From: Lepidodermella squamata
Taxonomy: Eukaryota; Animalia; Gastrotricha
Reading direction: 5' to 3'
Assembly: GCA_047495785.1 (NCBI GenBank)
Contig: JBLDXI010000017.1
Span: 2,666,001-2,730,000, forward strand
Length of the DNA stretch: 64,000 nt
Positions 24,337 to 59,024 of this stretch are shown in pieces. Made by a program: the position numbers and the translations under genes. The notes below the pieces were generated by a model that made no database searches, was not told the origin of the DNA, and worked only from the letters and a program-made list of their open reading frames with translations. Positions within the stretch are counted from its first letter, which is position 1. Every line of letters begins with the position of its first letter.

Positions 24337-26904
24337 GCTGCGGTTAGCAGCGATGGGCGAAATTTCACAATCAAAGAATCTTTGTTATGCTTGTAAAAAT
24401 TGTTCATACTTTCCATTTTTGTCGCCTTCAGACCACAGCTCAACATGTAACTAGTTGTTTTATACCCAAAAGATAGCTATCAATTGGAAATATTGAAAGT
24501 AATAAACGTGCTCTATTGTTGCAGCTTGGCAAGTACGAAATTATCATTGATTTTAACTGCTTTCGCGAAATGGCGGAAATCTGGCGGAAATCTGGATCTA
24601 AAAGCGAATAATGCTTGCAATCATGTATGATCGAAAACTCACGGAAATATAAGCTCAGGCTATTCGGCCCTTTATATATTCCGTTATTATTTCAGCAATT
24701 CCCAAACATTCATATATCAAAAACTGAAGCATAAATACATTGAGATGATGCGCATTATAATGCTTCCGGTCCATGCTGTTCGAAACCTCCAAACTGGGCT
24801 ATACCTACTATTTCGAAATTCGACAAGTCAAACAGTTACAGTGGGTTCAGTTTCATCCGTTGCTGCCCAACTTAGATTGGATACAGATCGAAGTCATGCC
24901 AGCAAGCCGTAAATTTACATTTTGAATGTAACACTGCCACGATTGGGCAGTCAATATATTCGCGATTTTTTACTTATTTTCCAGGGATTATTCCTCATTT
25001 CTAGAGGATTCTAGAGGAAAGAGAAGCATCCATGAATAAAGTACCTTCATATATAATCGGCTAGCCCACAGAGATGAAGGATCACAGAAATGATGTGCAT
25101 TATTATCTAAGAAAAAATTATCTAATATTATAAATGACCCGTTTTGAGACAAAGAAGTTGTGATGCTGAACCAGGCGAAGTTTGCATAAAACGAGAAGGC
25201 GCCACTTTGACAAAGTGTGCTTACAAAAACTTGATGATCGTAATATGGAAACAAAATTTATTGGAGGTAAATATGATCTACTGGTTCATGTGCATTACCT
25301 AATTTTGACAGATCCCTCACCATGAATTTCCTAATTTTTATTTTGCTGCTGCCTGCCTCACAAGTTCTTGGCTATCAGACAGCAGTGAAGCTACGACGAG
25401 TAAAATACTTTTTCTCTTCTTTGCCATTATTTAGAAGGTTCTGCTCATTATTTCTAGCATCATCAGCAGCATTTCAGCGAGTGTCTAATGCCGCAATTGA
25501 AAAATGGCGTCGTTATTGTTTTGACTGGATCGATAGATGAAGCCTATGTGACACCTCAAGCCGTCAAGCCTGGCACTGAAATAACCATCGAATGCGACGA
25601 TGGACATACCGAGCCGATAACTGCAGCCAATTTGTTCGTCTGTGAGGAGACTGGGCAGTGGTCTGACGCCGATAGCATTTTCTGTTCGTCATTTACAACA
25701 ATGGAGAATATTTTTACGTTCTGCTTTCAACACAGGTTCACCTAGCAATAAAGTTCAGAGGCTTAATTCAAGGCCTCGGCGCTTCTTGTTCTTGCTTCGC
25801 CACGTCTTCTCTCATAATTTTGAGACAACAACGCCGGCGTTTGTGCCGGATGAAGAATTTCCAGACGAGAGTATTGATTACTTTGATGAGTCATCAAGCT
25901 CTGAGCTGGAGACGAAGTTTTTTGAAGCTATTAAAAGGAGCGATCAGCGAGAAGCCAACGCAATTTTTAGCGAATTCAACGGAGTGGTCAAAGCTCGAAA
26001 TAGACTCAATCAATCAACCTTAATGGCCGCAATTGCCGTAGGCTCTGAAGATATGGTGGAATTTCTTCTCAACCTGGGCGTAAACGTTGAACGCAATTCT
26101 TCTTTAATAGAGGCAGGTATGTGAGCAACTCCTATCCTCTTAGCAAATCTTTTACCTGACCAACCTAAATAAATGATTTTGATCTCTCCGATTGATTAAC
26201 ATTTCCTTTTGCATTTGTAGCCAAGCATGGAAATCCTGGAATCGTTGAAATGCTCATCTACGCCAAGTCTAAGCTTCAAGTTTCCGAGAATGGGCGAACG
26301 CCGTTACACTGGGCCGCAGCATTGGGTCATACTGCCGTAGCTGATTTGCTTGTTGAACACGGTGCCAATGTTCGAGCTCAAATGGGTCAAACGGATGACG
26401 AGGGTACAGCGGTTCACGCTGCCATCTCGAATGGTCACGTCGAGACACTTTGCCATCTGCTCGACAAGAAGCCATTTTTAGTTGAATCGGTGAATAAGTT
26501 TGCCGAAACACCGCTAATGTTGGCCTCGCTACTAGGTCACCTGAATATTGTCGGGAAGTTGGTAAAAAGGTACAAAGCTTCGATCGAAGCTAAAACTCCT
26601 TACGGCAAAACCGCTCTTTTGGCTGCTGTTAATACCGATCAGCTGGCAGTTGTCAAGTTTCTGGTATCAAAAGGCGCCAATTTGACAGCCAAGACCAACA
26701 AAAACATAACAGCACTCCACTTAGCGGTTGAGAATCGCCTCTTTTACATGGCGCAGTATTTGCTTCGAGTTGCTCCACAGCTGCTAAATGAAAAGAATCA
26801 CAATAACAGAACTGCCTTCTTCCTCTTCCGTCTCATTCTTCCTATTCTTCCCTCTCTATCTTCCTATTCTTCCTTCTTCCACTCTTCTTCCTTCTCTCTT
26901 CCTT

Positions 26905-26934
26905 AGCGCCGCGCAGGCCTCTGCGCGCGGCGCT
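26905..26934. repeat. GC-rich subterminal hairpin
   Basis: AGCGCCGCGC-aggcctctgc-GCGCGGCGCT: a perfect 10-bp stem embedded in a TC-rich tract ~85 bp from the left junction. Confidence 0.85.
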
Positions 26935-27040
26935 CTTCCTTTTCTTCCTTTTATAGACGAATTCTGGCGTTTCGAGTCGCTGACGAGCCAATCACAAAGC
27001 GACACATTTCAGTTTGAAAATTATTAAGGCGCATTTTTTA
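26932..27040 (-). promoter_or_regulatory. Outward-facing CCAAT/TATA-like module, copy 1
   Basis: Minus strand reads TAAAAAATGCGC...TGATTGGCTCGTCAGCGACTCGAAA...CTATAAAAGGA...AGGAAGAGC. Promoter function is inferred. Confidence 0.55.
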
Positions 27041-29870
27041 TTATTTTGCTTGCTGTTTGTTTTGTTGCACACAGCGATTTTATTGTCGCGTATGATGTAA
27101 TAAAAATGTGTGTTTCCGTTTGCAAACGCATAGGTAAATAGAAATAATGACTACCTGCCTACTTATAATAAACGCGTAAAACAAAATGAGAAAATGTAAA
27201 ATGAGTAAAACCAAATAATGTAATTATGCCTAAATGCTTCGATCAGTCACAAAAATATTAGCAGATACCGTCTATGCATATGCGCACTACCAACACCGTT
27301 GCACAGTTACATATATAATACAGGCTGAGCAAAAAAGAGGCGCTATTTCTGCGCCAATGATGCTGCCTTGCCCATGCTTGCAAATGATGATCGCTTGAAA
27401 GAATAAACAAACTGTGAATTAAGATAATATTACTATTATTACTGTTTCCGCGGCCTCGGTAGATGTAGGACCGCTTGTTGTCACTACAACACCTGCGCAG
27501 TCATAGGGCGTTCACAGCCTGAATCAACGCGGTTTAGGTCGACTCAGTCGGTCTCGGTCACGGCAGCAGCAGCAGCAGGCGGCACATACAGCGCAATACC
27601 TAACGAAATGACCGTCACGTGGGTGACCGGCGGCGGAACGGCGGCACTTGGCACTGGGCCACAATGGGAAACCCTGCATGGTTATAAGCCCAAAAGACGG
27701 CTGAAAAAGCTGCGCATTTCAAATAGATGACACGAAATCAGCCAAAAATAAGGCACTTACATTTTGGTTTACCATCATCTCAATACACTATTGGTTTTGC
27801 GTCGAATTCCATAATTACTAAGCGCACACAAGCGAGTCGAGTGAGTCTCGATGAATTGCTGTTTTCATTTTCACAAAAAGCAGTGAAAAGATGCGAGAAA
27901 TGTGGCTCGATGCAGACGACTGCGTCGACGTGTCGCTGTGTGTGCAGTTGAGTTCCGCGCGTTTTTCAAATTTGTTGTTTCTTCGTTATTATGCTGCTGT
28001 TTCATTTTGCTTTTAGCGAAAAGTGGTACAATTCGGGAAGGTTACAATGCGCCAATCGCTCATCACTTTTTAATTCAGCCCCACTTTTACTACAACCCCA
28101 ATATTTTTCAGGCTTGGATCAAACTCTGGTCACATTCATTATCGGTTTTCATTGTATTAGGTTAATTATTCAAGTTATCGCTGCTGCGCTTACACAGTGC
28201 AGTGACGAGATGTTGTTTGCGTGCATTTCTTCTAGTTTGATACCCTGGGTTCCTTTTTCATCCGCATTTTATCTCTCGTTCCATCAAATAACCAATAACA
28301 GATACTTTTCTGTTTCCCCTACATGTGATAGTGTAGTTTCAGCATCGATTGTGCTTTAGGCTCTCATTTGAACTTAAACCAAAAACAGTTTTATGCCAAT
28401 GATGTGTCTGATACGTCGATGAGAGTTCCGTCTAGTGTTCAGTAGCGTTCAAAATTTTCCGCATACCAAACAGAATCGAACCTATCAATTCATTTTTATT
28501 TAACAAAAATTCATTTGGCGGGAAAAACTAGAAGATCAAATATTAGAGGAACGCGCGGATATAATATCCCTACAAAAATATAGCTATTATTAATGATAAG
28601 AAAATCTCGAGGGCGGGAAACAAGAATAGCATCAGAATTCTCAAAATTGAACGCTTTCATTTGCAGTTTACATATAAATCTTGTAATCTAAAAAGTAGAT
28701 GAAACGGTATCCAACACGGGTAAAGCTAGAAATTACAGATAGGCTTAAAGCGAGTATAGGTACAAACAAGTGAATATCGCGTTTTTTCAACAAATCTTCC
28801 ATCTCTCGCAGTCATACTTTGATGATGACCCACTTTACCAGACGCGGAAAGCTTGGGAAATCATAGGACCCGAAAAACAAGTGAGCTTGTCATGATTTCT
28901 TTCGATGTAGAAGTGTAATTCAAGTGCTTCGACAAACGTAGACCTCAGCCGATCTCAGCCTGCAATACAAAATAATAATATTTTAAAACTTGAAAAGCCT
29001 CCCCAGCAAATTGCACACATATTTGGTGAGATCATTTCTTGATTTAATTTGCAGCGCGCATTCAAGTCCGGTCTTTGAGACAGAAAAAAGGAAACATTTT
29101 CAGCGGCTAGTTTCAAGCCACCTTCAGTGTTAGCGCTCTCAACTAATTTGAATCCGTATCAATGTCTCGGTAATTCGAAAATGAAAATACAGTACTGCCC
29201 CAACTAATCGGAGTGTGGCTATTCGTACGAAGTATATGTGCGCAAAAATTGCTGTTTGTACGTCAGGAGTATAGAATCTGCAGATCCGAGCAGCAGCGTT
29301 GCTGCCGGCAAATGCAAATGCGAGAAATTTCCGGGAAATTTGAAACATTTTTAGTAGACAAACAGGGGAGAAATCGTGAGATATTAGAGCTCGCTTCACT
29401 CGCAAATGACAGATTTCTGGTATAATTTGATAAATTAGATGGTTTTTGAATTCGGCTAATATGTATGGGGCGTCATATAATATACTTAATACGTATTCAG
29501 TTATAGGGCTTGCTGTGTCGAATCGTAAAATTTCATGATGCTATCGTCAGATTTCGAAATTCCGCTTTCATTAACAAAATTAGGAATAGCAATTTTCGCG
29601 AACATCCTTTGTGCGAATAGCTTGGCCCCGAATAACCCAAATATGCCTTGAAATTAAGCCAAATTATATTGTTTTGGTCGCCTTGCTGGTAAAGTTTCGG
29701 GTCCTATAATTAAAAACTCCTAAATTGTCTTGTTTTTAGGCTGATATTTCGGTTATAAATATCAAAACAGAGATTAAAAGCTTTAAATCATAATAAGCAC
29801 AAAACAGAGCATAGAAGAGGAAGCATTCAACCTTGTTTTCTGATCATTTTTCTGATAGGCGAATTATAGA

Positions 29871-31660
29871 ATGAGAAGGACGTGCGAACCGTTCATCGGG
29901 ATATTCGCCCACGCTAGCCCCTTGAATGAAGTTAGAAAAAGCCATTACGGTCACCATCACGCCGCAAATTTTTGTGTGCGAGTCGGCAACGGGGAGGAGG
30001 TCAGAATGGCCGAAATGTACTTGTACACGCCTGACCTGTACAGAGACCTCTCTTACGGCTGCAGAGTTCAGCTTCAAGATGGCCGCGTGACCCAGGATAT
30101 GGCTACTCGGGCTCCATACCTGCCGGCGATGGAACAAACAGAGCGTATCGTTTTTAACGAAAGACACCACATCAAAATCCTGCCTTCAATCGAGTCCAAC
30201 GCTATTGACATCACCAATTTTCCGCCGCTGGGTAGTGGATACTTCGTTGACTACAATCACCGTGCTCTTCAGCCACCCGGTGGCAAACAATTTGTTTTGA
30301 ATGTTGCTGGGCGATTCAAATCGTTCACGGTGTGTGCAGCAGCTGAGAACCATGACGAAGTCGCCGGCAATCGGTTGAACGAAAATGGGCGATTGGTGAT
30401 CGTCGGCTTGGATGGCAAGGAAACTAGTAAGTAGAATCAGAAGATTATTATTTATTAAAAATAAATAGGCACGCACCCTTGTCCCTAGTCTAACATTCAT
30501 TCCGATAAATTTATACCAATATGCCAGATGGATGAATTTAAAATATAAAACTGAAAATTAGTAAATTAGCAATACGCCGATTTCTTATAATTTCTGATCA
30601 TTTGTTCGATCCTTTTTGCAGAGATTAAAGTTTGGAACGAAAAAAATTGTGACTTCTTGCATCGAATCCAACAGCAATTCAAAAACAGCGAAATTTGGAT
30701 ATATTTGTTGCAAGCAAAAATAAATGCGGAGGGCGAAATGACTACCTGCGGCCATACGGTATTTTCTTTGAGCAATGGATTTGTTTCGGCTAAAATTCGA
30801 AAGCTGGAGCAAAATGTTGAGAGCTTGTTTGTCCCTCCGCTACAAGACGCCCGTCCGTTGACGGAGCCCTTTCTGTGGGGAAGTTGTGACATTGCACGTG
30901 GCGGACCCGGCGTTGCCGTCAAGAAAACCTACCAGAATTCCAGCTGTTTGGCACTAGCGGCTAGAACTTCGAACCCGCCGACATCGTTCTTCGCAACCCA
31001 GCAGCAACCAGCGAAAATGCCGAAACTGATGGTCGAATCAGCAGGATTTGCAAGCCAAGCCGCCGCTTCGAATGCGGACCCAGGATGCGCTGAATTCATC
31101 AAACTGCTACAAAACAGCACGAAATTAGTTGGTCTTAAACTGCTACCGAAAGGGCATTTGTTTTTTAACAAGGTGAGAATTTATATGCTGGAAAATAAGG
31201 GAATCAAGATATTGACGTTTCCTTATGCGCGTTAAACGAAACTACGGCAATATTTGCATATTCGTTCTGAGCTCACTTTTTTAAATTTCAGCTATTGGTT
31301 TCGAACGCTTACCGCATTTGGAAGGCTGCCAATCTCGGAGCGACGGAAGACGAGTTCCTTGCGTGCCTCCTGTTGTCGCTGAAGGCAGTCGCGAAGGACA
31401 AGGCGCAAGAGGAGGTAACCTGCTATCGTTTATTCGATGTAATGGAAGCGGCGAAGATTAATACGCGCAAGATCAGCTTGCAGGCGATTGATATTGCACA
31501 AATTCTCCCGGCCAGCACTACGACAATCATCGAAACAGAGTCAGCACTTGCGGTAAGAACCTGGAAAAAACAGAAGATGTGTCTATTAAAAAATTATATT
31601 CATAATGTGTTGCATTAGATCTACAACGAATCGCTCCGCGCCCTCGGCTACTCGAAGTAG
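29871..31660 (+). CDS. RPA70-like tandem OB-fold protein with helical C-terminal domain (469 aa)
   Basis: Four in-phase exons: 29871-30426, 30622-31172, 31292-31552, 31619-31660. IVFNERHHI, VLNVAGRFKSF, GKETKIKVWNE and IYLLQAKIN resemble RPA70 DBD-A/B segments (MTFNNETSV, VDIIGICKSY, GKVVTATLWGE, LAIKGARVS) in order and spacing. Gene model is firm; fold call is by eye. Confidence 0.6.
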
Positions 31661-31846
31661 CGCGAAAGGATGTAGCAGGAATAAGTGCGATGGCGGAAAT
31701 GGCAATTTCCTTTCTTGACATCTCTATGCTTTTTTTTTAAAACTTGATTTCTGTTTGATTCATCCAGTTCAATAATAAGAACAATCTTTTTTATATAAAA
31801 CTATAATTTCTTGTTGTCATTTTGTAGGGTAAATTTTATTTAAAAT

Positions 31847-34144
31847 ATGGCATCGCTCACCTCGTCACAGCTGGCTGAGTTCGAAGAAGACAGCGGGTGG
31901 TCGATGGTAAATGAACCGCATTCATCAGTCGCCGCCGCCACCGCCGCAACATTAACTGCTTCACAACAGGCAGCGTTCGAAGACGAGGCTGGTTGGCCGG
32001 TTATGGAATGCAGCGCGAGCCAGACGAATTCGTCTCCTCCGCTAACTACATCGCAAATCGCGAAGCAGATGGCCGATGACACCGATTGGAAGGTCGAAAT
32101 CGCTCATCCGCCTAACGATTGCCCGATTGATGGCGACGACTGCGACGACGACGAAGATGATAGCGATGATGCGCTGTTGTCAGATATTATCATGGCGAAG
32201 ATAACAGAAGTCGTAGATATACAACACAAATGGATCGTAGTTCACGGCGTTGCGTGCGAGAAGATGTTGGAAAGCTTTAGAGCGGTGATATTGCGCGAAT
32301 CTCCCGGCTCTCTCGTATCGTCCCTTCCGCCAATGCCAAAAACGCCGTTTTATCGTGTGATCATCAGGTTTAATGACGAAAATGCGGCGAAAGATTTTCT
32401 TCAGAGGCGCGAAGTTGTCGTTCCGCCGTATCTCACCACACCTTTGCGTCTGTCTGCATTCGCGAAAGCAGATTCGAAGCAGCAATTTCAACTATGGACA
32501 GAGTCGGACTTGAAACAGTTCCCGGACCCTGAGTTCTTCTCGGCGATCAATGCCATCGTACCGCTTGAATATCCTGAACGTGTCATGTGCGGCGAGAGTC
32601 CTTTAGCTCTGAAAGCTGAATTCGCCGATCAATGCAATCGCAGCATTTTCTTCGAAGAGCTGTCTCTTGCTACACGGCTCGAAGATTTGGATGCTTTTTT
32701 TGTCAGCATTTCTTCGCGTGATGACGTCAAAACAATCAAATTGGCAAAGATGCCCAACGCTTTTGCTCAATTCGCCATCGCCGAGTTCCACACAGCGAAA
32801 TCTGCGCAGTTGTTTCTCTCAGGTCGAGGTCGAACGATCGAAATGTCCTGCGGTGGCGAAATGCGACGTGTTCGAATCGAGATGCTAGGCGAAAAGGTTC
32901 GAGGACAAAAACGCTACAAGATAGAAGCAAAATCCAGCATTGCAGACTATCGCACTGTCTACTGCTGGAGCGTTTCAGCTGCCGTCAATCGAGAAGAATT
33001 CGTGGCAAGATTACACCTTGGGCAAGACCTGGCTGCTGCGACGTATTTCTTCTCGCCACCTGGCTCGCCTTATCAGTACGTAGCCGTTCAGTTACGTTCA
33101 TCCGCTTCAGTCGACCAGTTTATCGCCGAAAAAACGCCTCTATTGGAAGATGGCTGGGCCTTGTACAAAGCCGACGAACCGGCCGGGTGTCGCCACGTTG
33201 TGACATACGTCCGGAAGGAGGACACCGTCATAGTGCGCGAAGAGGTGCTGTTTCCTTCTGCTTTGCCCCATCTTCACCGCGAGGCTATTCACATAAGATC
33301 GGCCGCTCATCTCGCCAGCGCTCCTGATGTTCGCCGTCTTGTCGCCTGTTTCTTGCCACACAACGCACCGAAAGTGAATCAGCTGGCTAAACTTGTAAGT
33401 TGAGACCTAAATATGAGAAATTGTAAATCATAGATTATGTTATAGATTTTCTTCTACTATACCGGCGAGTTCGTAGAAAGCACAAAGAGAATCTTGGCGC
33501 AAACGTATGCCGACGTTTGGACGGGGGCCCTAACCGAACTGGACCGGCTGCGACGAGCTCGAACTGGCGACCGATGGAATGTATATTGTCTTTTTAGCGA
33601 AGATCTCATGTGCCCATCGCAAATCGGCGAAATGTGTCCACCCATTCAGCGTCGATTGCTGGCCTTCATCAGCCCGCTCGACGATTCCGCGCTCGACGTC
33701 TCTGGTCTTATTACTGCCGTAGAGTCCGTTGTCGGTTTGATCGGGTCGCCGGTGGACCAAGAAGCTGCAAAACGTCGCGCCCTTCGCTCTGATCCCGGCA
33801 TCAGCAAGCTACATGAGGAAACTAAGAAGAAATTCGGCCTCATTGAAGCAAACTGTGGAAATAGCGGCATCTATGTCCACAGTGATTTAATGGGGCTGGG
33901 TCATATCTATATTGGCCAGTCGAAGCGGGTTCTGCAGCGGATCCAGAAGCACGAGTCCTATCTGAGGACCGTTGACCTCGGCCAGCCAATCACCCGGCAT
34001 GATGTGACCACCGGCCGCCGCCACCCCGTTCTGCCGATCCACTTCGGTATCGTCGCCATTCCGCCGATCGCCGATCTTAAAAGGGTCGAAGCGATGTTTA
34101 TCGACTTGTTATTTCCGGCACTGCTCAACGTCGACAACAAATGA
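31847..34144 (+). CDS. Triple RRM-like - GIY-YIG endonuclease fusion protein (748 aa)
   Basis: ORFs 31847-33403 and 33494-34144 are joined by a 51-bp phase-0 intron (33395 GTAAGT...TATAG 33445). C-terminal SGIYVH...IYIGQS...RIQKH...EAMFI...LN. RRM-like units: WIVVHGV/VIIRFNDENAA, SIFFEEL/FAIAEFHTAKSA, TVYCWSV/YVAVQL. Confidence 0.8.
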
Positions 34145-34962
34145 TGGCTCTATCGCTAATAAGACGCGGTTTTGTACGCATGAATGATAATAAAAACTTG
34201 GTGTAAAAGTAAAATGCCTGTTAATTCGAGTAAAAAACAAACATTTGTATGCCCAATTCTGCTCGGCAATGTGATGATATATGATATTATTAGATGGACT
34301 CGCAAGTTGAATATTTCAATAAAATCACCCGTGATTTTGCAAAGAAAAGGTTTTTTTAATTATGGATTATCGTTGAAAGATTTAAGCGATTGAAATGTCG
34401 ATGAAATGAAAGAGATCAGCGGCGGCGGCTACTACACGGGTCAAATTGCCTTACACTACAATAAATACCAACATAATTGTCTTAACGAAGGCTTTTTTCA
34501 GGTGACTTGATGATACTTTGAAAAGACATTATCGGAACATCGCAAGAATTCGAAATAAGAGAACTGATCATGGCTGAAGTGATTCGAGTAAATTTAACTA
34601 CAGAAATTATTTTACATTACAAGCACTGTTTTTTACAAGTTAGCCCGCCAGAAGGTATTGTTCAAGTAAATCAACTATACTTTAATGCGGCGGATTTTTT
34701 CTTATGACGGAGTACTCAAGTTGATACAAGGAAGTTTTCATAGCGTCTGCGGCAGCTCATTTTATGAGTGTGCGTGTATAGTAGGTGTAATAAATTCGCT
34801 AAGCCGCCGGTATACCAAATAATAATGATGTCAAGTAATCGCCTTGTGCCTTTTCTGTCTAGGTCATCAAAGTCAGCACTTCGCCTATGTTTGTGCAGAC
34901 AATCTTCTATGATGTTATTCAGGATTACTTATGAACTTCATAAAATATGAAAGAAAATATGA

Positions 34963-35048
34963 TAAAAAATGCGCGTAAATGTAAATTTATCTAATGTTGA
35001 TTGGCTCCTTAGTGACTCGAAATTTCTATAAAAGGATAAGGAAGAGCC
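34963..35048 (+). promoter_or_regulatory. CCAAT/TATA-like module, copy 2 (inverted relative to copy 1)
   Basis: TAAAAAATGCGC...TGATTGGCTCCTTAGTGACTCGAAA (22/25 identical to copy 1)...CTATAAAAGGA...AGGAAGAGC. Confidence 0.55.
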
Positions 35049-35289
35049 GCTATTGGAGGAGAGATGGAAGATATAATGGCGCCACATCTTTGCAAGTCGC
35101 AAAACAACCCGGATTCGACTAATAAAGACCAGCGAAAACGATTAGGACCTCATGTCATCCTCTATTCCTCAAACGGCAACATCTATTCCTTCTCTGTTTA
35201 TTGTTACATAAATATTAACCCACGGACCGGAGATATTCAAAATAGAAGCTTAAAGAATTGGCGAGACGAAGTCATTCAGCGTTGAGAGT

Positions 35290-36790
35290 TGAGAGTAATC
35301 CGTAATCCTTGGCAACGACGCTGAACTGTCGGCAAGCCAAAGAGCTATTCTACCTAAAAATAGCTCGAAAGCTTCGGATGGTGAATGCTTGACGCCGCCG
35401 ATATTCCACTCCACATAAAATGAGGTCGACCTGCATTATTAGGTGTAAAATTCCCTGATTCGGGCGATAATTCTTCTCCAATATACAAGGGTTAATAATT
35501 TATCATTTAGAATGATACATTAAATTGTCCACCCAACCCATCCGATAGTGAAGATCTGATTTTCTCATGCATTTATTATGACTGAAGAGTTTACTCATTT
35601 TTGCAATGGGTTGCATGATTTAATCAACCAGGCTTTGGAACGCGTGGAACATAGTGAAATACTTCGATAGATTTTCGCTCGAGAAGATCATCCTGCGTGC
35701 ATAGTCATCTGCTGCCGCATATAGGACGAGATGGCCATTTGGTTTGACGAAAATGTAGGAAAACGGAATGTTTAATTGAAATGTTTGAAATCAAGTGAAA
35801 ATTACTTCATCCATCATTACAAACACCTTCATCTTTCATTGTGTGCAGTGGGCACTGCCATATTGGATAACGACATCGGAAATCAAGCCAGTCATATATT
35901 GCTTCATTCTTTATTCAATAAAGGCTCCGTGATTACTTCTCTCCTCGTCTCCATGCTATTAGGTGTTCTTCAAGTCTGGTATAATATGAGTATAGCTTAA
36001 GACTTATATGTGAGTATATTCGAAAAGGAAAATTGGTTAGCTTCGACAAGAAATCACAGCTAAGCTTGTTGGCATGATGGCCATCAATCAGCCATCTATG
36101 GATTTTATCACAATCCCTGGTACAAGTACTCGGTTAACTGGCGTTGAGGCTTCGCTGTCATCATTGCCAAGAAATGGCATCGCAGCTTCCACCGATGACA
36201 GCCGCATTGTTCGAGCTACCTCGGCTTCTTGCAGACGTTTTTCTTGCTGCCGCATGTCCTCCTGCAAAAAAGGAAGGTCAAAGACAATTATTGCTCGGCA
36301 GTGCGGAAGGAAATGAAGTTGATGCTAAATTCAAGCGCAAAAAGCTCATTCTAAATTGTTTACTTCATATTGCTCCTGAATTTTCGCTCCCAATGCTGCT
36401 AACCATTCACGATCCAAGATTCGAATAACATCGGAGCCCATTAGCTTCACCAAACGTGATTTGATGATGGACACGGCCGCGCCTCTGATGAAATTAGATT
36501 GGAATATAAATTTTTATAATATTATGACAGCTAAATTTACGCTCCGAACGAAAACTCCTTTTCGTTATAGGTGAACACACCGGCTTCAAAGTAATCGTTA
36601 TTATTGCCGATTGCCGCTATTTGGCGAGTCTTCTTGACTGGTGCTTGCCGCAACTAAGAAAGCTGCAAATTTCACCTTACCAGCATCCGGTTTTACGCTG
36701 CGACTGACTGTCTGCGAGCCTGTTTCTTGAGTAGTGATAGCTGGTTTGATGATACCAGCTGGCTTATTAGGTGTCGCTTTATCCGTCATT
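35290..36790 (-). pseudogene. Decayed multi-exon gene of unknown family inside the insertion
   Basis: Spliceable minus-strand segments give ...YFEAGVFTYNEKEFSFGA|GAAVSIIKSRLVKL...QEQYE|EDMRQQEKRLQEAE...; downstream segments contain in-frame stops. Confidence 0.45.
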
Positions 36791-39412
36791 GCAAGTACAT
36801 GATCTAAAATCTGATACAGGTATTATAGCTATAAATTCAGCAAATTTCGCTTGAACTGGTGACAAGAATATTGACATCAGCGATCAAATAGATGGGCTAG
36901 TCTCAAGACTTGTAAGACTGCCAAAGACTGGTTAATGATTAACTACGAATATAACTGCTGAGAAAAAGAAAAGTGCAAGACGAATAGGTGAAGAAAATGC
37001 GGCACCGGGCGCGGCGTGGCGATTGGGGGCTTGCATCAAACGCATTTTTTTCGGCAGTCAGATTCCGGTGCTTTGAGCTGGCCACTTGCAACCATATCAA
37101 TGTTTCACGTTCATTAAAGCGATCGATTTTTAGCAAAAATAGCCACACCTATTGTCGTTCCTCAAGTATTGATGAATCTCTGACGTCAGAATAGAAACAC
37201 TACTGACACCTGTTGCGATAAAACACTAAAAACCGAACAACAAAAAGTTTATAAGCACACTTGCATCTTGAAGCAGCAAGTTTTCTTCCCTTTTCCTCTC
37301 TTATTTTTCTATCTTTCTCTTCCATCTACAGAAAAGTGGCCAGATTGAGATGGTTGAGCTACTCACGGAAGGAGTAATGCCGTTCATAGTCGACGTGCAT
37401 GGCAGGACGGCTTTGCACGAAGCAGCAGCGAACGGGCATCAAGCAGTAGTGCAGCATCTGATGAGCAAAGCATCTTCATGGCTGCGGGTTCGAAGCTTCA
37501 AGCACGATCACGGAGATACACCTTTGACCTTGGCGATTAGGAATGGCCACATGGATGTTGTTCGCACCTTACTTACAGTTGATCCCATCGCCCAACTTAC
37601 GGCACGCAACTTCGATATGGAGACTCCGTTGTTGATAGCTGTATCCAGCGGAAATACTGAGATTTCCTGCTTCCTGGCAAGCACCAAAGCCGGTGCCAAT
37701 ATTTCAGTCGATGATACAGATACAAATGAGAGAACTGCCTTAATCGTTGCGGCTGGTCTTGGCTACAGCGAAATCGTCAAGTGTCTCGTCGATAGCGGTG
37801 CGAATATCACAGCGAAATCTGGTCCCAATAGTGGAAAAATAACATCAGTTCATGCCGCTGGTTAGTCTGGTTATATGAACTTTTGTTGAGTCTACTACAT
37901 AGTTTCGGTTTTTCAGCTATCAACGGTTCCCTCAAGGTGCAGAAGGTTCTGGCGAAATCTGGTGGAAAAGAAGCGCTAAATGCGCTTGATGGCTATGGAT
38001 CAGTTCCATTGTTTACTGCAATCATTTCCAAACAATTCTCGTCTGCTCGCCTATTAGTCGAACTTGGAGCTGATATCGAAGCTAGAACGGCGCGAGGTGT
38101 TACACCGTTGCTAATTGCAGCCGACAAAGGACACAATGAAATGGTTGAGTATCTCCTTGACAAGAAAGCTGATATTGAAGCTAGAGATGCTTATGCCAGA
38201 ACACCTCTCCTCGCTGCCGCAGGTTTGTCAGAAATCACTCATGTGTTTTAGAAGTGCCTAACTCCGTTTAATTAAATAGCATCTGGCCATGTCAATACTA
38301 CTCGGCTGTTGATCGAAAGAGGTGCGAATGCATTAGCAACAAACCAACTCGGTTACTCGGCACTCCACCTGGCTGTTGCTCACCGTCATGCTGAAGTAGC
38401 TGATTATCTTCGCACTGCTAAGCCTGAGCTCATTTCTTTAAAAACAGATGACAAAATGTCTAACAAACAGCTGAACTCTAACAAATTCAAAACTTTGATA
38501 AACGCCGGACGTCCTCGTGTTAGAATCTGACCTTTGATGCGCTGATTATTCTTCGAATTAGTCATGAGGAATTGTTGACATTACGCGTCTTAGCTGATCA
38601 GAAATGGAAAATGGAAAATGATCGCGAAAATAAACACTTTTGTTTGTCAATTTTTTAATTAATCTAAAAATAGCAGTAGCAAAGTAACAAAGGACCAAGA
38701 ATTAGAGCGCAAATAGCAGGTCAATAGTTCTATTCATAGAAGAGTCAATCATCGCGTCATGACTCATATGTCAGGGTACAGGGCACGCTGGAAGTTGGAC
38801 AAACTACTCGGTTTTGCCAATCAGGCATGCGTCCATGATACTGAAGATACCAAACGATTCCTCATCATTAACGTATTGCTTCTCCAATTTACATTAAATT
38901 TAGTCAAAATCTGAGCAGATGCTGCTACTTTTGAAGCTCAAAAGTTGACAAGGTGGCAAACATCACCTAGGTTGACAAAGGCCTGCTCAAGCCTCAGACC
39001 CCGATGCTGTAACCATGGCAACGATGCTGTCGATTGCAATATCATAAAACAATGATCATGATATTGGTTTCAATTTATGAAATTCAACTAACACTATTCA
39101 AAGAAGATAAAATGCAAACTTGTCTTAATGACCTTGAACTTTGGCGCTACTTTCAAATTGTATACCCTCCTTGGCATCGAGGGCTCGAGGGTCGCTTCTT
39201 AAGCCGACGGGGTTAATTGCTCAGTGGAACCCAGACTAATTAACGCCGGTTGTTAATTAGTCAGTCAGAGGTCATAGTCAGTTATCTGCTCTCGGGAGGA
39301 AAAGGTCTTGGCGGCAATTACATGAAAATTACATGTTACATGAGAGTTTTACATCTTATTTACATTATCATTGAGATTGAGTGTTGACTGATATTTCCTT
39401 TTAGGATTTTAG

Positions 39413-42400
39413 ATGATTACACGCTTGTTGCTACTCATTTGCCTGAATTTATTTGGCGGAATCCATGCTGGCTACATCGACTCAACTGTGTATTTGGCGG
39501 CTTCAAATAATGCATTGACCATTCTGAAGCTGATGATTGCCATGGGTGCTGATCCTGACAGTATTGGCCAGGATGGCCAGTCAGCTCTCATGGGTGCTGC
39601 TGCGAATGGCCATCTTGAAACTTTCAAATATTTGGAGTCTCGCGGTGCGCGAATCGATTTTAAAAGTCTTGTGTCAGGCGAGACAGTATTGCACATTGCT
39701 GTCCGTCACGGCCAAGATGTGCTTGTAGACTACCTGTTAAGTAGCAATGGTATTTCGCTGCTAGAGGAAAAAGATCTGAACGGAAATTCGCCTTTAAATT
39801 TGGCAGTAATTAATGGCAAAGAGTCTGTGCTTGATGAATTGTTGGCGAAAAATCCTTCTCTTGAAACAAAAAATCGTTACGGACGAACCCCTCTGCTAAA
39901 TGCTTGCGCGTATGGTCATTTATCGATATTACGCCGCCTGGTTGATGCCGGAGCTGACGTTCTTGCTCGAAGCGGCAAAGAAGATGGTGAAAATACAGCT
40001 GCTCATTTGGCAAGTTATTATGGCCACCGGGAAGTATTGGAATTTCTTATCGAACTTCGACCATCTTTCGTTGATGATAAAAACTCAGCTAATGAAACAC
40101 CACTGTTTGTGGCAGCTTACATGGGCCAGAAAGATGTGGTGGCGTTGCTGATGCCGAAAGGAAAAAAAATGCAGCAAGCTACTGATCGATTCGGTCTAAA
40201 TCCCTTACTTGCTGCCATTAGGTTAGTCTTGCTTAGCCTAAGTGAGGAACTTTCCCTAAATATTTGTTTATTGAAGCTTTGGACGGTTGAATGTTGTTGA
40301 AACCATGAACGGAAAAGAAGGGAGTACATCTGACCGTAGTGCTGCCATCTTTGAATCAGCCGAAGCTATTCATCTCGCTGCTCTATTGGGATATACGGAC
40401 ATCCTTGCGAATTTGATTGCGGGAGATGAAACATTGCTCGAAGCACGCGATATTAACGGGTCATCACCTTTGAATAAAGCATCTTCTCTTGGTGTTATCA
40501 AATCCGTCCAATACCTGATAAGTAATAAAGCGAAGATTGAGTCCGTCGACAAGTTCGGCCTTACCCCACTTCTGTCGGCATCAGCTAATGGCCATGCAGA
40601 TGTTGTGAAGTACTTGATTGAGAATGAGGCTAATGTCAACTTCCGAGGGCCCAATGGGCAGCTTTGTGTTCATATAGCTGTGGCCAATGGTCACATTGCT
40701 GTTTTGAATACAATTTTGAGCTTCCACCGTGAATTGATCGAGAGTAAGAATGACTTGGGCGAAACGTGTCTCCTCTTCGCGGCAAGAGTAGGCCAGGCGG
40801 AAGCTGCTGAGTTTCTTATCGACAATTATCAAGTTGATATAGAATCTCGCGATATGAATCACTTCACGCCTTTAATTTCCGCATCGTTCCGTGGTAACTT
40901 GGCTGTGTTAAAAGTTCTCCTAGGCAGAAATGCAAACCTTGACGCCTCAATATTAGGGGTCGACCAAGACACAGCAATTCATATCGCCAGCCGCCAGAGT
41001 CAAGTTGAGGCCATTAAAATCCTAGTTGGCAATGTGCCCAGGTTGCTTGATACGAAAAATGCTCGCAATAACACCCCAATTTGCGTTGCAGGAGAATCGG
41101 GTACCATTGAGGTAATCTCAGAGCTTCTTAAACTCGGGGCTGAAATTGAAACTAAATGCTTGAACGAATCTACACCTTTAATTTTGGCGGCTGTGAATAA
41201 TCAACCACGTGCCATCGAATTTCTGCTAGAGAAAAGGGCCAACATTTTGGCGAAGACAGGCGTTGATTTCAATGGTAGCACCGCTTTGCATTTAGCAGCT
41301 GAACTAGGCCACAGTGATGCAATGCGAGCACTGTTAAGGAACTCGGATTCTCATATCGTCGAAGCTAGAAATAACTTCAATAGAACACCGCTTTGGGTAG
41401 CTGCTTTTGCTGGACAAGAGCAGTCTGTCAGAGTTCTCCGGTTCCACAATGCTAATCTCGAAGCTAGTGATCTGTTGAACAGGACACCCCTGCTAGCTGC
41501 TGTGTTGGCAAACAAGGCGAATATCGTTCGAATTTTATTGGGAGAGGGCGCAGATGTGAATGCGCTTACCAGCAAGGACGACTTCAGTCTAACACCTCTA
41601 ATTTACGCCGCTAAATTAGGATTCAGCGACGTTATTTCTGCGATGCTCGACAAATATCCTCAGTTGGTTTCGCAAAAAAACCCGGGTAACGATGGCAATA
41701 CAGCTTTGTGTGTAGCTGCTTTTGAGGGTCAGCTGAAAGCTGCAGAAACTTTACTGCTAAGGAAATCACCGACAGAGGGGCGGTGTGAATATGGAAGGAC
41801 GGCCTTGTTAATCGCTGCCGCGGCGGGCCACGTTCCTGTAGTCCAAATATTGCTGACTTCGGGTGCTGACGTGAACGCCCGTGGCGACAATGAACACGAT
41901 CGCGGTAATACAGCCGCTCATTTGGCTGCGAAATTCGGTCATGTCAATGTCTTGAAAGTGTTGATTCGTTCGTCGCGCAGCCTACTCGAGTCAGAGAATG
42001 CGGACCGATACACGCCGTTATGGCTCGCTGCGGACCAGGGCCAGGCTAGAGTTGCTGATTTCCTGCTAACAGAAGGCGCAGCAAGTAGCGCTCAAGGTTC
42101 GCGAGGTTACAGCCCGTTCCTCGCAGCGGCTGCGTCGAATAAACTCGACGTACTCAAAGTCCTGGTCTCTCGCAAGGTCGGCGATTCTTCGAAGAGCAGC
42201 ACCGAGGATGGTGAGAACATGGGAGTACACGTTGCCGCGATCAAGGGAAATGTCGACGTGGTTCAATATTTATTGGAAGGCAAACCAGCGTTGGTCAACA
42301 AAACTAACAAGCATGGTAATTCTCCGTTGATTCTCGCAGCTGCAAATAGCCACGCCGAAGTGGTCGACTTGCTGATAAAGTCCAAGGCCGATCTGGAAGC

Positions 42401-45400
42401 GCCGGGTCAGTTCGGCTGGACAGCTTTATTAGCGGCAGCAGCCTCCGGTCATTTAGCTATGACCCGTCATCTCATCGGCGTTCATCATGCGAATTTCAAT
42501 GCTAAAAGCAACGACAGCAGTCTGGCGGTTCATTTAGCTGCTGAATCCGGTCATTTTGAGGTGGTTGAGTACCTTTTGCGAGCAAATTTTAATGAGCTCG
42601 AGTCGAAAACAAGATCTGGCAACTCGCCACTTTGGCTTGCAGCAAGTCGTGGTCACCTGCGAACTTGCGAACTCTTAATTCGTAATTTCAGTGCTAATCT
42701 AGAATCGACTGGTCAAAGCGGCTGGACCCCGTTATTAGCGGCCGCTGCGAACGGCCATTTAGCGATTGTTGCATCGTTACTTGAGCACGGAGCTAACATT
42801 CTAGCAACAAGTGACGTGAAAACCAGCCGAAATTTCGCTATCCATTTAGCACTGAATAATGGCCATGTGAAAATTGGTGAGCTACTCATTGACTCAAATG
42901 GCAAATTGCTGGAAGCTCGAAACGATTTTGGTTGGACTCCTATTCTTTCAGCTAGCGCTTATGGTCAAGTGAATTCTTTGGATTTCTTGCTTCGTCGGCG
43001 CGCCGACTTGTCCGCCCGGAGCTTTGCAATCGACGGCGGAAACTCAGCCTTGCACTTGGGTGCGATCTACGCGAAGGTCAACGTGCTAACCATGTTATCG
43101 AAGGCGAAACGGGAGCTGCTGAACGCAAGAAATGACAACGGCGAAACAGCGCTGTGGCGAGCGGCTCAACTCGGCAATGTTCGAATGGTGGAAAAGCTGA
43201 TCGAGTTGGGCGCACCTGTCGACTGGCAGTGCCCACTCGGCTGGTCGGCTTTTAGCGCTGCCGCGGCTCATAACCGCGTAAAAGCCGCCAAGGCCCTGCT
43301 GCGTAAGGGAGCTAAAATGGTCGAAACGTTTGACGCAGCCGGAAATAACCCCGTACATCTTGCTGGTTTATACGGGCGAGTTCGAGTCATTGATTTTTTC
43401 GAAAAATCGCAAGTCGACGTGGGTTGCAAGAACAAGTTTCAAGAGACTCCTTTCTGGCTTGCGGCGTATGGCGGGTCCGATGCGCTTGTGGCGAAATTGT
43501 TGAAGGATGGTAATCACAATAATTTTCGAGGTCGGAATGGCTGGACACCGTTACATGCCGCTGCAAGCAATGGGCATATCAGAGTGGTAAAGCGATTGAT
43601 TGACAATGGCTTTTCGATTGATTCTCGTAGTTCGGTCGAAGACCTTTTGAGTGCTCCGATCCACGTGGCTGCATCGTACGGGTACGGCAATATGGTTAGT
43701 TACATCGGCAAAATTGACAACAATGCGCTTGAACTGAAAGACGCGCGAAATAATACGGCTTTTCATCGAGCAGCGGCCGAAAATCGATTAAATGTGGTTG
43801 CTGCTTTACTGCGATCTTCAGCGAATACCAAGGCTATTGGCCAGTACTCATATACTCCTTTTCATGCAGGTTAGTATAATTCTATCAATATCAAGCCCTG
43901 CTGTAATGTGTCTTTTAAGTAACCAGCTAAAGAAAGTAGTTAGCTATGACGATTGAAGAAGATCCGAGAAGCTTCGATTCGGGGGATTACGGGAATCTTA
44001 GCGAAATTTTTAGGTCACGCTGATAGCATTTTCCTGTGTTTAATTTTGCTTCTTATTCCAAGAGTGGAAATCATTCATTAATGCGTTTGTTGGTTTCAGC
44101 TGCTGCTAATGGCCACACGAAGATCATGCAGATGTTTATCGGCCAAAATCCCGATATTCTAAACGCACGAACTTTGACTGACCAGCACTTGGCCATTCAC
44201 ACGGCCGCAGCCCTTGGAAAAGACCTGAGCTTAAATTTTTTGCTGGACACCAGGTCAGATTTGATTGAAGCTCAGGATCGTTATGGAAATACTCCGTTAT
44301 GGGTTGCTGCTTATTCCGGGCAATTTGCCAGCGTGTTATTGCTGCTTTCACGTATGGCGAACGTTGAAGCTCGTGGGCGCTATGGCTGGACTCCTTTATT
44401 AGCTGCTACCGCAAACGATCATGCTGATATCGCCGAATTGCTACTAAAAAATGCTTCTGCCAATGCATTAGCTCGCAGTGATGTGATCTCGGGTGAAAAC
44501 ACCGCGCTACATGTTGCGGCTCAGTTCGATTCTGACGACTCTGCCTCAGTCCTATTGAGTCTCGCGAGGCAACTAGTCGCATTGAAAAATAACAAAAACA
44601 ACACAGCACTGTGGGTGGCTTCATCGCTCGGAAATACCAAGGTCCTAAAGGTCTTGCTTGATTCTGATTCCGATCGGATGATATCGGATGAATCTTCATC
44701 CTCTTCCCCAATTGTTGTTGCTGTGGAGAAACAACAGCTAACCGCAATTCGAGTCTTACTCAGCTACGGCAGTGGTATAGACTCGGGGAAGAAAAACGGT
44801 GAAAATGTGCTTCATTTAGCAGCGTCTGAAGGGTTGATCGAGTCTGGCAAACTTTTGGTTGAAATTCGGCCGGAACTTGTTAATTCTCGTGATCACGTCG
44901 GCGAGACTCCACTTCACAAAGCTGCATCGTCGGGCAATGTTGCTGTGGTGTCGCTGTTACTAAAAAATGGCGCCGATGTTACGATAACTGCGAACAATAG
45001 TTACACCCCATTCACCACCGCCGCTGTTGCCGGTCAAATCGGAGTGATGGAGGAGCTGGTAAATAGTGGCAAAATCGATTTCAAATACCGAGATACAACG
45101 CAGCGGACCCCGCTCTACTGGGCTGTTTTCCTAGGCAGCGTCCCGGCTGTTAAAATTCTGATCGAAAAAGGAGCCGATCCGGAGGATCGAAGCCCGATAC
45201 CGGCCGATGACGGCGCCATGTCAATTCATCTTGCCGCTCATTACGGCCACTTGAATGTCGTTAGTTTCTTAATTAATGTCAAGAAAGACTTGATTGATGC
45301 CAAGTCGAACTCGCGTGAAACGCCCTTGTTTTTCGCCGCGAAAAAGGGCCATGTCGAAGTTGTTCGACTTCTGCTTTCGAAAAATGCGAAGAAGGAAATT

Positions 45401-48400
45401 CGGAGTGCCTCCGCTCGAACGGTGCTACACGAGGCGGTCTTTGCTAATCAAACTGAAGTCGTTTCGGCTTTAATCGAAAACCAGGTCGATATATTAGCGA
45501 CTGCCGAGGATGGAAACACAGCACTTCATATAGCGGCGAAAACCGGGTTCCTACCCTTGGTTAAACTGCTAACCAACGTAATAAAATTGGGAATTAAAAA
45601 TAATTTGGGCCAAACTCCTCTGTGGCTGGCGAGTAAATATGGGCGGTTAGAAGTAGTCGAGTTCTTGAGCGATCGCTCTAATGAAATTGGCGTGGCCGAT
45701 ATTGATGGTTGGACCGCCCTGCACGCCGCTTGCTTACACGGAGAGAAGGCAACCGTCGAATTGCTAATTCGAAGAGGCGCTAATATTTTTGCGAAAAGTT
45801 CGGAACATAAAAACTCCGAGATACCCCTTCACTCGGCTATTCGATCGAAAAACTTGGCTGTTGTCAAGGTGGTTCTTAGCCAGGACGCGAGCAAGCAGCT
45901 TGAAGTTGTGACCCGCAACGGTTCGACTCCGTTATGCATTGCAGCTGAAGTGGGTTCTGCTGAAATTTTGGAGTATCTGCTCAATCAAGGTGCGGCCATT
46001 GAAGCCAAGTGCCAGTTTGAGGCAACTGCTATCATGATAGCTGCTGGTAAAAATCACCTGGCAGCCGTAGAAGTTCTCGCGAATCGTGGGGCTAATATTT
46101 CCGCCGAGTTGCCGTCTTCTTACGGCCGGAGCTCGGCTTTTCACCTTGCAGGTTTGGTATAGGGAAACACGGATCGTTGTTGGCATATAATTTTTCAATT
46201 TTTATTCAGCGAAAAACGGGGCAGTTGATGTTTTGCGTTATTTGTTGCGCGCAAATCCAGCCTTCCTCGACGACGCCAATTCACGAGGCGAAACGCCGCT
46301 GTACATTGCGACAGTTGAGAATCAAATCAACGCGATGGAGTTTTTGATCAGTTCCGGAGCTAACCTAGAGTCGCGTTTAAATAACCGCCCGCCGCTGTTT
46401 CAGGCGGCATCTTTAGGACACGAAGAGGCTGTCAGATTGCTGATAGCTGCCGGCGCAAACACCGAATCCCGTGGTCCTCTCGGACGCACTGCTTTGCTTG
46501 AAGCTGCAGGTTGTTATTTGAGTATTTATCGGATTCAAATATTTAATTGGACCTATAACTTAGGGCAATGTCGAGTGAAAGTTGTGGAGGCTCTGTTGCG
46601 AGCCGGCTGCGATTATATGGCGCGGAGCTATCGTCAGGACTCTGAAAGTTCAGCACTGCATTTGGCTGTCACGAGCCGCTGTGTCGAGGCAATTAAAGTT
46701 ATGACAGATTTACACCCTGAAATGCTGAATTTACGAAACGCAGTGAACCTATCCGCCCAACAGTTGATCGACCGATCTCCTGCGATAAGAAAATCGCTGA
46801 GTTCCGAGCGAGACCTTTTGATTTCGGTTGTTGAATCTGGCGAAGCTTCAACGCTGAGGACGCTCATTCGAAATGGCGCTGATGTATTGACGAAAAAGTC
46901 GACGCATCGAGGTGGCGAAGGTCTGGTCCACTTGGCGATTTCTAGAGGTCATCTCAGAATCGTCAAGCTTCTCTGGGAGACTGATGCAAATTCTCTGAGT
47001 GTTGTCGATAACAACGGCAATACCCCGCTGCACGCAGCTGCTCTAAGCGGACATTCTGAAATAGCCGAATTTTTGCTTGAGAAGGGTGCTAAAATAGAGG
47101 CTCGCAACATATATGGCTGGACACCATTTTTAACAGCGATGGCAGCTGGACAAATGGAAATGGTGAATTTTTTAGAAGAACGTGGCGCTAACATCTACGC
47201 CAGAGCTAATAAAATGGGCAATTTAGAAACAGCTATTCATTTAGCGGCGAAAAATGGTCATGTGAAATGTATGGAAGAATACATGCATCGAATGCTGGAG
47301 AAGAAGAAGTACAAAAAACACGGTTTGCATTAATCAAATTTCGCAGTCGAACCTAGTTTATATTTTAATATATTCCAGGTATCGAGGCGAAAACTTTGCG
47401 AAAAGAGACGCCGCTACACTTGGCATCAGCTAATGGAGCCTTAAAAGTTGTTCGAAATCTCTTACAGCGTCAGGCTAAAATCGATGTGCGAGACGAGATT
47501 GGACAGACTCCTTTCATCGTAGCCGCTGCTAATGGTCAGTTGGATGTTATGCGGTTTCTGTTAGACAAGGGAGCCGATGTTTTAGCGAAAACTTCGACGA
47601 GAGGCAGCGATGGCTTGACGGCGATTCACATGGCCGTTATCAAGGGTCAACATGGCGCCGTTGAGCTTTTGATTCAACGCAACCACGAACTGATTGACTT
47701 GCAGAGTGGTCTCGGCGAAACGCCGCTGTGGCTAGCTGCGTCGCTTGGTGACGAGAAAATCATAAAACTTCTCGCGTCCGAGGTCGATCTTTCAGCGCGG
47801 TGCAACGCCGGACTAACCCCACTGCATATCGCTACACTCCTGAACAGAATTAGCACTGTCAAGTTGTTGATTAACGCTGGGGCTAATACTCAAGACGGCA
47901 CAGCGCAGGATTCAGCGCAGGATTTGCCTTTCCATCTCGCGGCTATTTACGGCCACATTGATTTGATCAAATACTATAAAAGTATATATAAAAGCGTGGA
48001 AGTTGAAAACGCATTAGGCCAGACGCCACTCTGGCGAGCGTCGTATTTTGGAAGGCTCGAAGCTGTTGAAACTCTTTTGTCATTGGGCGCAAGTTATCGC
48101 CAGGCGGATCATCAGGAATTAACCCCGTTAGAAGCCGCTGCCATGAGGGGCCACCTCAGTGTCGTGAAAGCTTTGTCGGCTAAAGGCAGTCAATCAACTA
48201 GCTCTCGATTGAGCTCATCCTCCCACCCGATTTTCCTGGCGGCTGAATATGGCCAGTTGGAGGTCGTGAAATACTTTTTAGACGTCAATCCATGGTTGTT
48301 GGAGGAGAAAAACTCCAACCAAGAGACGCCGCTTTGGCGCGCGGCTTACGCTGGCCAGTTGTCAGTCGCTGAATTCCTAATCAATCGCCGCGCTGCTATC

Positions 48401-57915: not shown

Positions 57916-59024
57916 GATTTAAACACCTATAATGCAACGAAAAATCACAGTAATAATTTCATTCGTTCGGAAAATTTTATTATTTTTTGAAGAAATTCAT
58001 CTCCTCCTCATCCTCGCAAATACTAAGATTATGCGTTCTTTTAAGAATGATCCCAGTTGGCTAGATTTTTCAAAGAGCTGTAAGATTTAGTGTAGTAATA
58101 TCTGAATCGAGACTGCGCACACAGAAAAAGAGACAATTTAGAACACTCACTGAGAAACTCACAGCGTCGAATATGCACCGATTCTTGATTTATAGTAATG
58201 ACCAATAAAACACGTAGCTCAAACAGCAATTCGAATAAAATTACTTGATACCGATAGATAAAGACCAGCTAAAATGTGAGATTATTATCATGAAAAATAT
58301 CCGCAAATAAAAGAAAAATTAAAACCAGAAGAAGAGCCGTTCTTCCGTCTGCAACTTTTCAAATTAGATCAGGCACATAGTGAAGTAAGAAAACGCAAAC
58401 AAAATATCAAAAAGTTGCAAACGAAAAAGATTGTTTTTTTTCACTCAAGTTGTCCCGGGAATTTAAAGGAAACTGGCCTCCATATATAGCGCAATCCGCC
58501 AGGAAATTTGTAAATATTTCATTATTTCCGATAGGCACACATTTAGAAAAATAAATAGCAACGCCCATTTCCATATTATACTATAATACATGGCAGAATC
58601 TACCGCAATACAAATAAACTACCCAGTAAAGGCACGTTCTTCACCTAAGCGGGTTTCCTTGTGCAAAAGCGTCAACAATTGAGAGAGCGCATCCGGCGCG
58701 AGAGAAAAATTGCAGCTGAAAATCGACAGATTACACAGATCCATGATCGTTATATACAATTTAAAGCAAGAATTGAAAATGATAAGTGATAATACGGGGC
58801 GAAATACTGCAAAAATGCTGACTAGGAATGAAGTTTTACTGCTGCTAAAATGTACATTAATTTTTTCCGGCCCAAACGAGCGGAAAAGCAGTAGAAGTGC
58901 ATAATAAAGCGAAACGGAAAATTGACGGCGATTTTTTTTTAGTTCGAAATTGAAGCTCATAAAATGAAGCTATAAGCATTATCACGGATCAGAAAATTTG
59001 ACGACTAGGTGAGAAATTATGCAC

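Follow-up and report, generated by a model that had tools for sequence, protein, structure and literature searches.

The DNA analysed here is a 64-kb stretch of the gastrotrich Lepidodermella squamata (contig JBLDXI010000017.1, positions 2,666,001 to 2,730,000), referred to below as the window and numbered from its first letter. The window is eukaryotic and dense in genes. It carries very large ankyrin-repeat genes, an AAA ATPase, a phospholipase C (PLC) and a PRISE-family gene, and its introns are short (~50-120 nt) with borders of the form GT[AGT][ATG]G[TA]...AG. One of the ankyrin-repeat genes, designated gene D, is divided into a left and a right half by a block of 10,503 bp that contains two intact genes of its own, gene 1 and gene 2. 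Our tentative reading, to which we give somewhat less than even weight, is that the block arose by true insertion of a single self-contained unit into ankyrin-repeat coding sequence, and that this unit was moved or captured by outside functions. The positions of all features are collected in Table 1.

Gene D begins with a signal-peptide-like open reading frame (ORF), followed by a Sushi domain (PF00084, E = 4.6e-5, exceeding the family cut-off) and finally by ankyrin repeats (Ank families, E = 1e-32 in the profile search of the left half). The last ankyrin ORF of the left half (26250-26906) reads in frame through ...NEKNHNNRTAF to 26819, then enters a tract of T and C only and reaches a stop codon at 26904-26906. 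Ankyrin coding picks up again in frame at 37323 with HLQKSGQIEMVELL.... The left and right pieces are successive parts of one repeat, so the 10,503 bp splits a repeat that was once continuous. An earlier sequence-only reading of this stretch had placed the break in mid-repeat, between RTAF and HLQKSG, and our analysis agrees with it. Both halves of gene D are still open and have good splice sites. Both junctions carry CTTC or TTC within low-complexity sequence, which leaves the borders uncertain by 3-4 nt.

Table 1. Features of the inserted block and of gene D, in window coordinates
Feature	Position	Strand	Description
Gene D, left half	25322-26819	+	Signal-peptide-like start, Sushi, ankyrin repeats, end ...NNRTAF (ORF list and profile search)
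Inserted block	26820-37322	+	10,503 bp; borders uncertain by 3-4 nt
Left polypyrimidine tract	26815-26907	+	93 nt; 9- and 22-nt periodicity (tandem repeat finder)
GC palindrome	26905-26934		10-bp stem, after left tract
Inverted repeat, left arm	26932-27047	+	TATA-like and CCAAT motifs
Gene 1	29871-31618	+	Exons 29871-30426, 30622-31172, 31292-31615; 477 codons; intact
Gene 2	31847-34144	+	Exons 31847-33394, 33446-34141; 748 codons; intact
GIY-YIG-like stretch	33866-34129	+	C-terminus of gene 2
Inverted repeat, inner arm	34954-35047	-	TATAAAAGG faces right, toward ATG 35064
Right segment	35048-37279		2.2 kb outside the inverted-repeat unit; short ORF fragments on both strands
Right polypyrimidine tract	37280-37327	+	48 nt; followed by CAG, with ATG 37350 18 nt on
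Gene D, right half	37323-38530	+	Ankyrin repeats, two short GT-AG introns, open throughout
AG acceptor-like start sites	29850-29870, 31820-31846, 37320-37349, 25300-25321, 39395-39412, 57916-57940 (minus strand)		Pyrimidine-rich AG before ATG

The pair of pyrimidine tracts at its borders speaks most strongly for the block being a single discrete structure. The whole 64-kb window was scanned for runs of 40 nt or more in which C/T or G/A made up at least 92%, and exactly two passed, both on the plus strand and one at each border. The left tract contains the read-through tail and the stop codon of the left ankyrin ORF. The two tracts resemble each other somewhat beyond their composition (local score 33, compared with 20.6 +/- 4.2 for shuffled sequences; 6 of 500 shuffles scored as well). 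The TC-rich ends noted by the sequence-only reading are real and stronger than it had stated, being the sole two long C/T tracts in 64 kb. The GC hairpin it had noted also held up: the palindrome that follows the left tract has a predicted stability of -16.2 kcal/mol (z = -4.5, with none of 200 shuffles as good). Self-comparison of the outer ends found no mutual inverted repeats and no long direct repeats.

An inverted repeat that the earlier account does not mention lies farther inside. The module at 26932-27047 (plus strand) recurs inverted at 35047-34954 (minus strand), a match over 95-116 nt with 82 of 89 aligned columns identical and several indels; the local score of 71 is about 25 standard deviations higher than that of shuffled sequences (18.7 +/- 2.1). 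Both copies carry a CCAAT motif and TATAAAAGG, facing outward in each. Weaker similarity extends about 30 nt further outward, across the site of the palindrome, and the alignment shows that the palindrome itself is missing from the inverted copy at about 35050. The repeat encloses an inner part of 8.2 kb with both genes. No further occurrence of the module was found in the window or in the metagenome or viral contig collections. To the right of the inner copy, none of the ORF fragments of the right segment showed homology. At 35027-35285 of the window, the inner copy of TATAAAAGG stands about 35 nt upstream of a 73-codon plus-strand ORF beginning at ATG 35064; this ORF had no homology. It may represent a small third gene, or else a first exon whose transcript continues toward the right half of gene D.

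Genes 1 and 2 are intact, co-oriented and intron-bearing, as had been read from the sequence. Their introns are canonical GT-AG, and neither model has stops or frameshifts. The donors of gene 1 are GTAAGT and GTGAGA and its acceptors are pyrimidine-rich CAG; the single intron of gene 2 is 51 nt long (GTAAGT...TAG, phase 0). A TATA-like motif lies upstream of each gene, and a pyrimidine-rich AG site lies 16-22 nt before each ATG. The same feature occurs at the starts of gene D, the next ankyrin gene and the PRISE gene, and at ATG 37350, in the right half of that gene D. Across the window, a pyrimidine-rich AG stands 0-22 nt before the ATG at most clear gene starts, which would fit spliced-leader trans-splicing or 5'-untranslated-region introns. 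The G+C and third-position G+C contents of genes 1 and 2 are inside the host range, and neither codon usage nor a codon log-odds score separated the block genes from host genes or from noise. The two genes look like genes adapted to this host. The decayed minus-strand genes reported earlier were not recovered as genes: that strand yielded short ORF fragments only, with no homology.

Homology searches with the two genes were run exon by exon. Gene 1 gave nothing but noise in Pfam, NCBIfam, PHROG or a phmmer search of PDB at E <= 10; its earlier description as RPA70-like is not upheld, since no RPA or OB match appeared even at E = 10. Exon 1 of gene 2, which had been read as three RRM domains, gave no RRM profile match, no PDB match and no internal repeat, and nothing in Pfam at E <= 10. 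A word-indexed search of 5.8 billion clusters returned no homologue of exon 1 of either gene. Neither gene had a relative among viral contigs, and gene 2 had none among metagenome contigs when protein patterns were used. With full HMMER, exon 2 of gene 2 had no true relative among 1.84 billion representatives. One 990-residue protein (P0001) matched this exon at E = 4.5e-10, and the match was rejected as spurious because it summed eleven weak stretches. P0001 consists of about eleven near-identical tandem units of 92 residues and is probably a translated satellite; the case calls for caution with targets rich in repeats. Judged by these searches of billions of proteins, genes 1 and 2 are orphans.

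The C-terminus of gene 2 has a GIY-YIG-like stretch. Its GIY (33866-33874) is followed eleven residues later by YIG (33908-33916), then by a helix-like stretch with an arginine and later by one with a glutamate. The GIY-YIG family core consists of a GIY-YIG hairpin, an arginine helix, a linker strand and a glutamate helix (PMC3045582), and the order of the motifs in gene 2 is that of these elements. The profile matches to this stretch were faint: PF01541 gave E = 0.1 and 13.4 bits, where its cut-off is 22.6; TIGR01453 gave E = 0.11 and 12.4 bits, where the cut-off is 56; and phrog_19106 gave E = 0.0066. The GIY-YIG call of the sequence-only reading was kept in part: the motif order is right and two faint profile matches agree, but all scores are below curated cut-offs. 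A tblastn search of this part against phage records gave nothing significant, and two single-sequence AlphaFold models, one of exon 2 and one of the middle of exon 1 (both with a mean pLDDT of 36), were unusable. A GIY-YIG-type nuclease domain at the C-terminus of gene 2 is plausible. At the other end of the protein (31862-32089), the first 85 residues contain three short acidic motifs, in which S/T-S-Q is followed by acidic residues and then W, two of them found by pattern search and the third by eye; they may represent a short linear interaction motif.

We screened the block in six frames by comparing all 86 stop-to-stop segments of at least 50 aa with Pfam at E <= 0.01. No DDE transposase, reverse transcriptase (RT), tyrosine or serine recombinase, Rep, helicase, capsid, polymerase, integrase or packaging domain was detected, and no ankyrin remnant was found within the block. 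The absence of a DDE transposase, RT, HUH Rep/helicase and tyrosine recombinase had been stated from the sequence alone, and this screen confirms it. A PDZ match at E = 0.0072 was discarded as being at chance level for 86 queries. The tRNA scan was negative, Rfam gave no match, hammerhead ribozymes included (the window at the gathering threshold and 26500-37600 at E <= 1), and the tandem repeat scan showed no telomeric repeat array. Self-BLAST of the window revealed no second copy of the block, and no relative of it was found in viral contigs, metagenome contigs or protein collections. Of the suggestion that the block belongs to an undescribed family or is virus-like, two parts were retained: an insertion into a once-continuous repeat, and the lack of any known mobility enzyme. 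A second copy, a relative or a viral hallmark was not found, and nothing in these results marks the block as a mobile or virus-like element.

Several findings besides the split repeat speak for insertion of a self-contained unit. The block has an architecture of its own, with co-oriented border tracts, a GC palindrome and an inverted repeat around both genes. No GT-AG or GC-AG pair preserves both the frame and the interrupted repeat, and the introns of gene D itself occupy another, conserved position. The genes of the block have canonical splice sites, start sites like those of host genes and a composition within the host range, and the six-frame screen gave neither a mobility or viral domain nor an ankyrin remnant. 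Since no enzyme recognisable as serving its own movement lies in the block, the unit would have been moved or captured by functions from elsewhere. A circular or head-to-tail intermediate might have been opened within one long pyrimidine tract, so that each end of the unit would keep a piece of the tract, in direct orientation. This route is proposed because the tract parts are co-oriented, the ends have neither terminal inverted nor long direct repeats, and the junctions share 3-4 nt of identity. The unit would then have been joined to a break in an ankyrin codon by microhomology, through the 3-4-nt CTTC common to both junctions, with enzymes supplied from elsewhere unless the possible nuclease of gene 2 participated. 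Gene D would now be two genes with two products, the left half ending at the stop codon in the tract and the right half starting from ATG 37350. The right half is treated as a gene with this start because the ATG is preceded by an acceptor-like site, as at other gene starts in the window.

Several points weigh against this reading. A single copy of the block was found, insertion is inferred from the split repeat alone, and the junctions are those of the assembly. The exact junction may differ from the one given here: the joined repeat has a T-to-G spacing of 8, compared with 9 in 48 of the 52 repeats of the window, and because it is thus one residue short, one TTC at the junction may belong to host gene D. 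The short CTTC direct repeat noted earlier does exist, with CTTC or TTC at both junctions, but it sits in low-complexity sequence and carries no weight on its own. The inverted repeat does not form the outer ends of the block and leaves 2.2 kb on the right unexplained, and the block could be composite. Finally, the circular-intermediate step is pure inference.

Two alternatives survive best, each of them unlikely. In the first, the block is a Penelope-like cassette moved in trans, with the left module and its inner inverted copy as pseudo-long terminal repeats (pLTRs). The element would then be encoded by the minus strand. Its GA-rich 3' tail would meet the left junction, and the right junction would hold an upstream copy with a heavy 5' truncation. 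Genes 1 and 2, on the plus strand, would be antisense cargo, which would explain why their introns were kept. In Adineta vaga, the pLTRs of Penelope-like elements measure about 180-220 bp, contain a TATA box, have a palindrome at one end and often stand next to an inverted pLTR; the elements include single-copy families, captured spacers of 0.9-1.5 kb, microhomology junctions without target-site duplication (TSD) and intron-bearing host genes between pLTRs (PMC3846280). The resemblance of the block to such cassettes is real. Its left module likewise has a TATA-like motif and an adjoining palindrome, its inner module is the inverted copy of the left one, it is a single-copy insertion with microhomology junctions and intron-bearing genes that are not those of an element, and gene 2 gives a faint GIY-YIG signal. 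However, no RT was found in any frame and no hammerhead or other Rfam family at E <= 1, although both are defining features of such elements. Of the pLTR arrangement, the inverted pair is present; a direct partner is limited to the pyrimidine tract, which is all that the right end has in common with the left. No RT adjoins the GIY-YIG-like domain, which is preceded by 516 residues without RT signal, and the block, at 10.5 kb, has long pyrimidine tracts at both borders. The telomeric end repeats of Terminon/Athena elements were not found in the block.

The second of these alternatives, no more probable to us, is that gene D now uses the whole block as a single very long intron, with genes nested inside it. 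The 48-nt pyrimidine tract followed by CAG would make a strong acceptor, and both halves of gene D are still open. All GT and GC donors around the left border were compared with all AG acceptors around the right one. One GT-AG pair, 26727/37331, is in frame, skips exactly one repeat unit and gives a well-formed hybrid repeat. However, no GT-AG or GC-AG pair near the borders keeps the interrupted repeat, and position 26727, as a donor, falls within good ankyrin coding sequence. The three introns of gene D (26117-26220, 37861-37915 and 38223-38279, approximate positions, all GT-AG) are about 55-105 nt long, compared with 10.5 kb for the block. They share one conserved position in the repeat, after T-x-L-x-x-A(A) in phase 1, whereas the block interrupts the repeat after T-A-F in phase 0. 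The left tract and the inverted repeat would also be left unexplained. Splicing through 26727/37331 is possible as a present-day rescue and would not be the original structure. The shared placement of the three introns looks as if intron and repeat unit had been duplicated together.

An assembly artefact, in which an unrelated contig was placed between the halves of gene D at the TC tracts, seems to us a little less probable still. Both junctions do lie in low-complexity sequence, which is error-prone for assemblers. Such an error would need two independent mis-joins that return to the same codon of the same repeat, however, and the tracts are related and co-oriented, as expected for one real structure. 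The composition of the block and the style of its genes also match the host.

A more ambitious form of the insertion reading is that the block is the first member to be seen of an undescribed class of large nuclear cargo elements. The GIY-YIG nuclease of gene 2 would promote insertion into protein-coding repeats by a homing-like cut-and-copy process, gene 1 would be accessory, and the tract, palindrome and inverted-repeat modules would be sites acting in cis. We regard this as quite improbable. The end structure, with co-oriented tracts, a palindrome and an internal inverted module, is, as far as the sequence comparison goes, not described for any class that we checked.

The sequence-only reading had also pointed to Helitrons and to Penelope-like elements or Terminons, and these leads are weakened because the RPA70 and RRM calls failed and the GIY-YIG signal is below threshold. 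Helitrons have 5'-TC ... CTRR-3' termini, an insertion site between A and T and a hairpin 10-20 nt from the 3' end, and their autonomous copies encode a Rep (HUH) and helicase protein. A non-autonomous Helitron with an RPA70-like gene would account for the GC hairpin near one end and the lack of a TSD beyond the trivial CTTC, and yet it is very improbable here: no Rep/helicase occurs in six frames, Pfam, NCBIfam and PDB searches with gene 1 gave no RPA/OB signal, and the hairpin stands 86 nt away from the border. Read on either strand, the termini do not have the required form, and the bases next to them are other than A and T. No more weight can be given to an integrated virus-like element, which would fit the orphan genes and the distinct block with repeats, given that the block has no capsid, polymerase, integrase, packaging or other domain, no relative in 2.9 million viral contigs with three protein or DNA probes, and spliceosomal introns, start sites and composition of host type.

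Other known systems share parts of this structure. Cryptons are tyrosine-recombinase elements that are thought to integrate from a circle; they have no inverted or long terminal repeats at their outer ends, a short direct repeat at the junctions and intron-bearing genes. The block is like them in its lack of outer terminal repeats, its short junction repeat, its intron-bearing genes and the outline of a circle being opened, and unlike them in that no tyrosine recombinase is present in any frame and that it is much larger than Cryptons are known to be. It differs from DNA transposons with terminal inverted repeats in that C/T predominates on the same strand at both outer ends, the inverted repeat lies internally and no DDE enzyme is present, and from LTR retrotransposons in that self-comparison gives no direct repeat and no pol domains are found. 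The closest ordinary process is a one-off capture of circular or chromosomal DNA at a double-strand break, which matches the single copy, the microhomology, the host-like genes and the missing mobility enzyme, but gives by itself no reason to expect the inverted repeat and the palindrome of a structured unit. On the sequence of the window alone, such a capture would explain the same facts except the internal module structure, and a low-copy element would be indistinguishable from it.

The surroundings of the block were also compared with other sequences. Ankyrin-repeat genes with signal-peptide-like starts lie at 25322-25745 and 39413-50341, and the ankyrin ORFs of the second, the gene next to gene D, extend from 39413 over about 11 kb. 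Giant ankyrin proteins that are secreted or membrane-anchored are unusual. At the other end of the window, the PLC and PRISE genes (56689-63500) are syntenic with two ENA metagenome scaffolds (4700-11209). The closest relative of the PRISE protein, at 57% identity, is on a eukaryotic ENA metagenome scaffold. In the stretch available, the synteny with these scaffolds is limited to PLC-PRISE, and the ankyrin cluster is not common to them. Exact look-ups of the window proteins returned no recorded match.

What the insertion means depends on whether the block has other copies. If it was a single capture, it would be an ordinary structural variant, and its main value would lie in the two orphan genes, which are lineage-specific, and in showing cleanly how one gene turns into two. 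If other copies exist, the block would be a large intron-bearing cargo element outside all classes tested, and it would add a route for gene movement and for the splitting of repeat-protein genes in a poorly sampled eukaryotic lineage.

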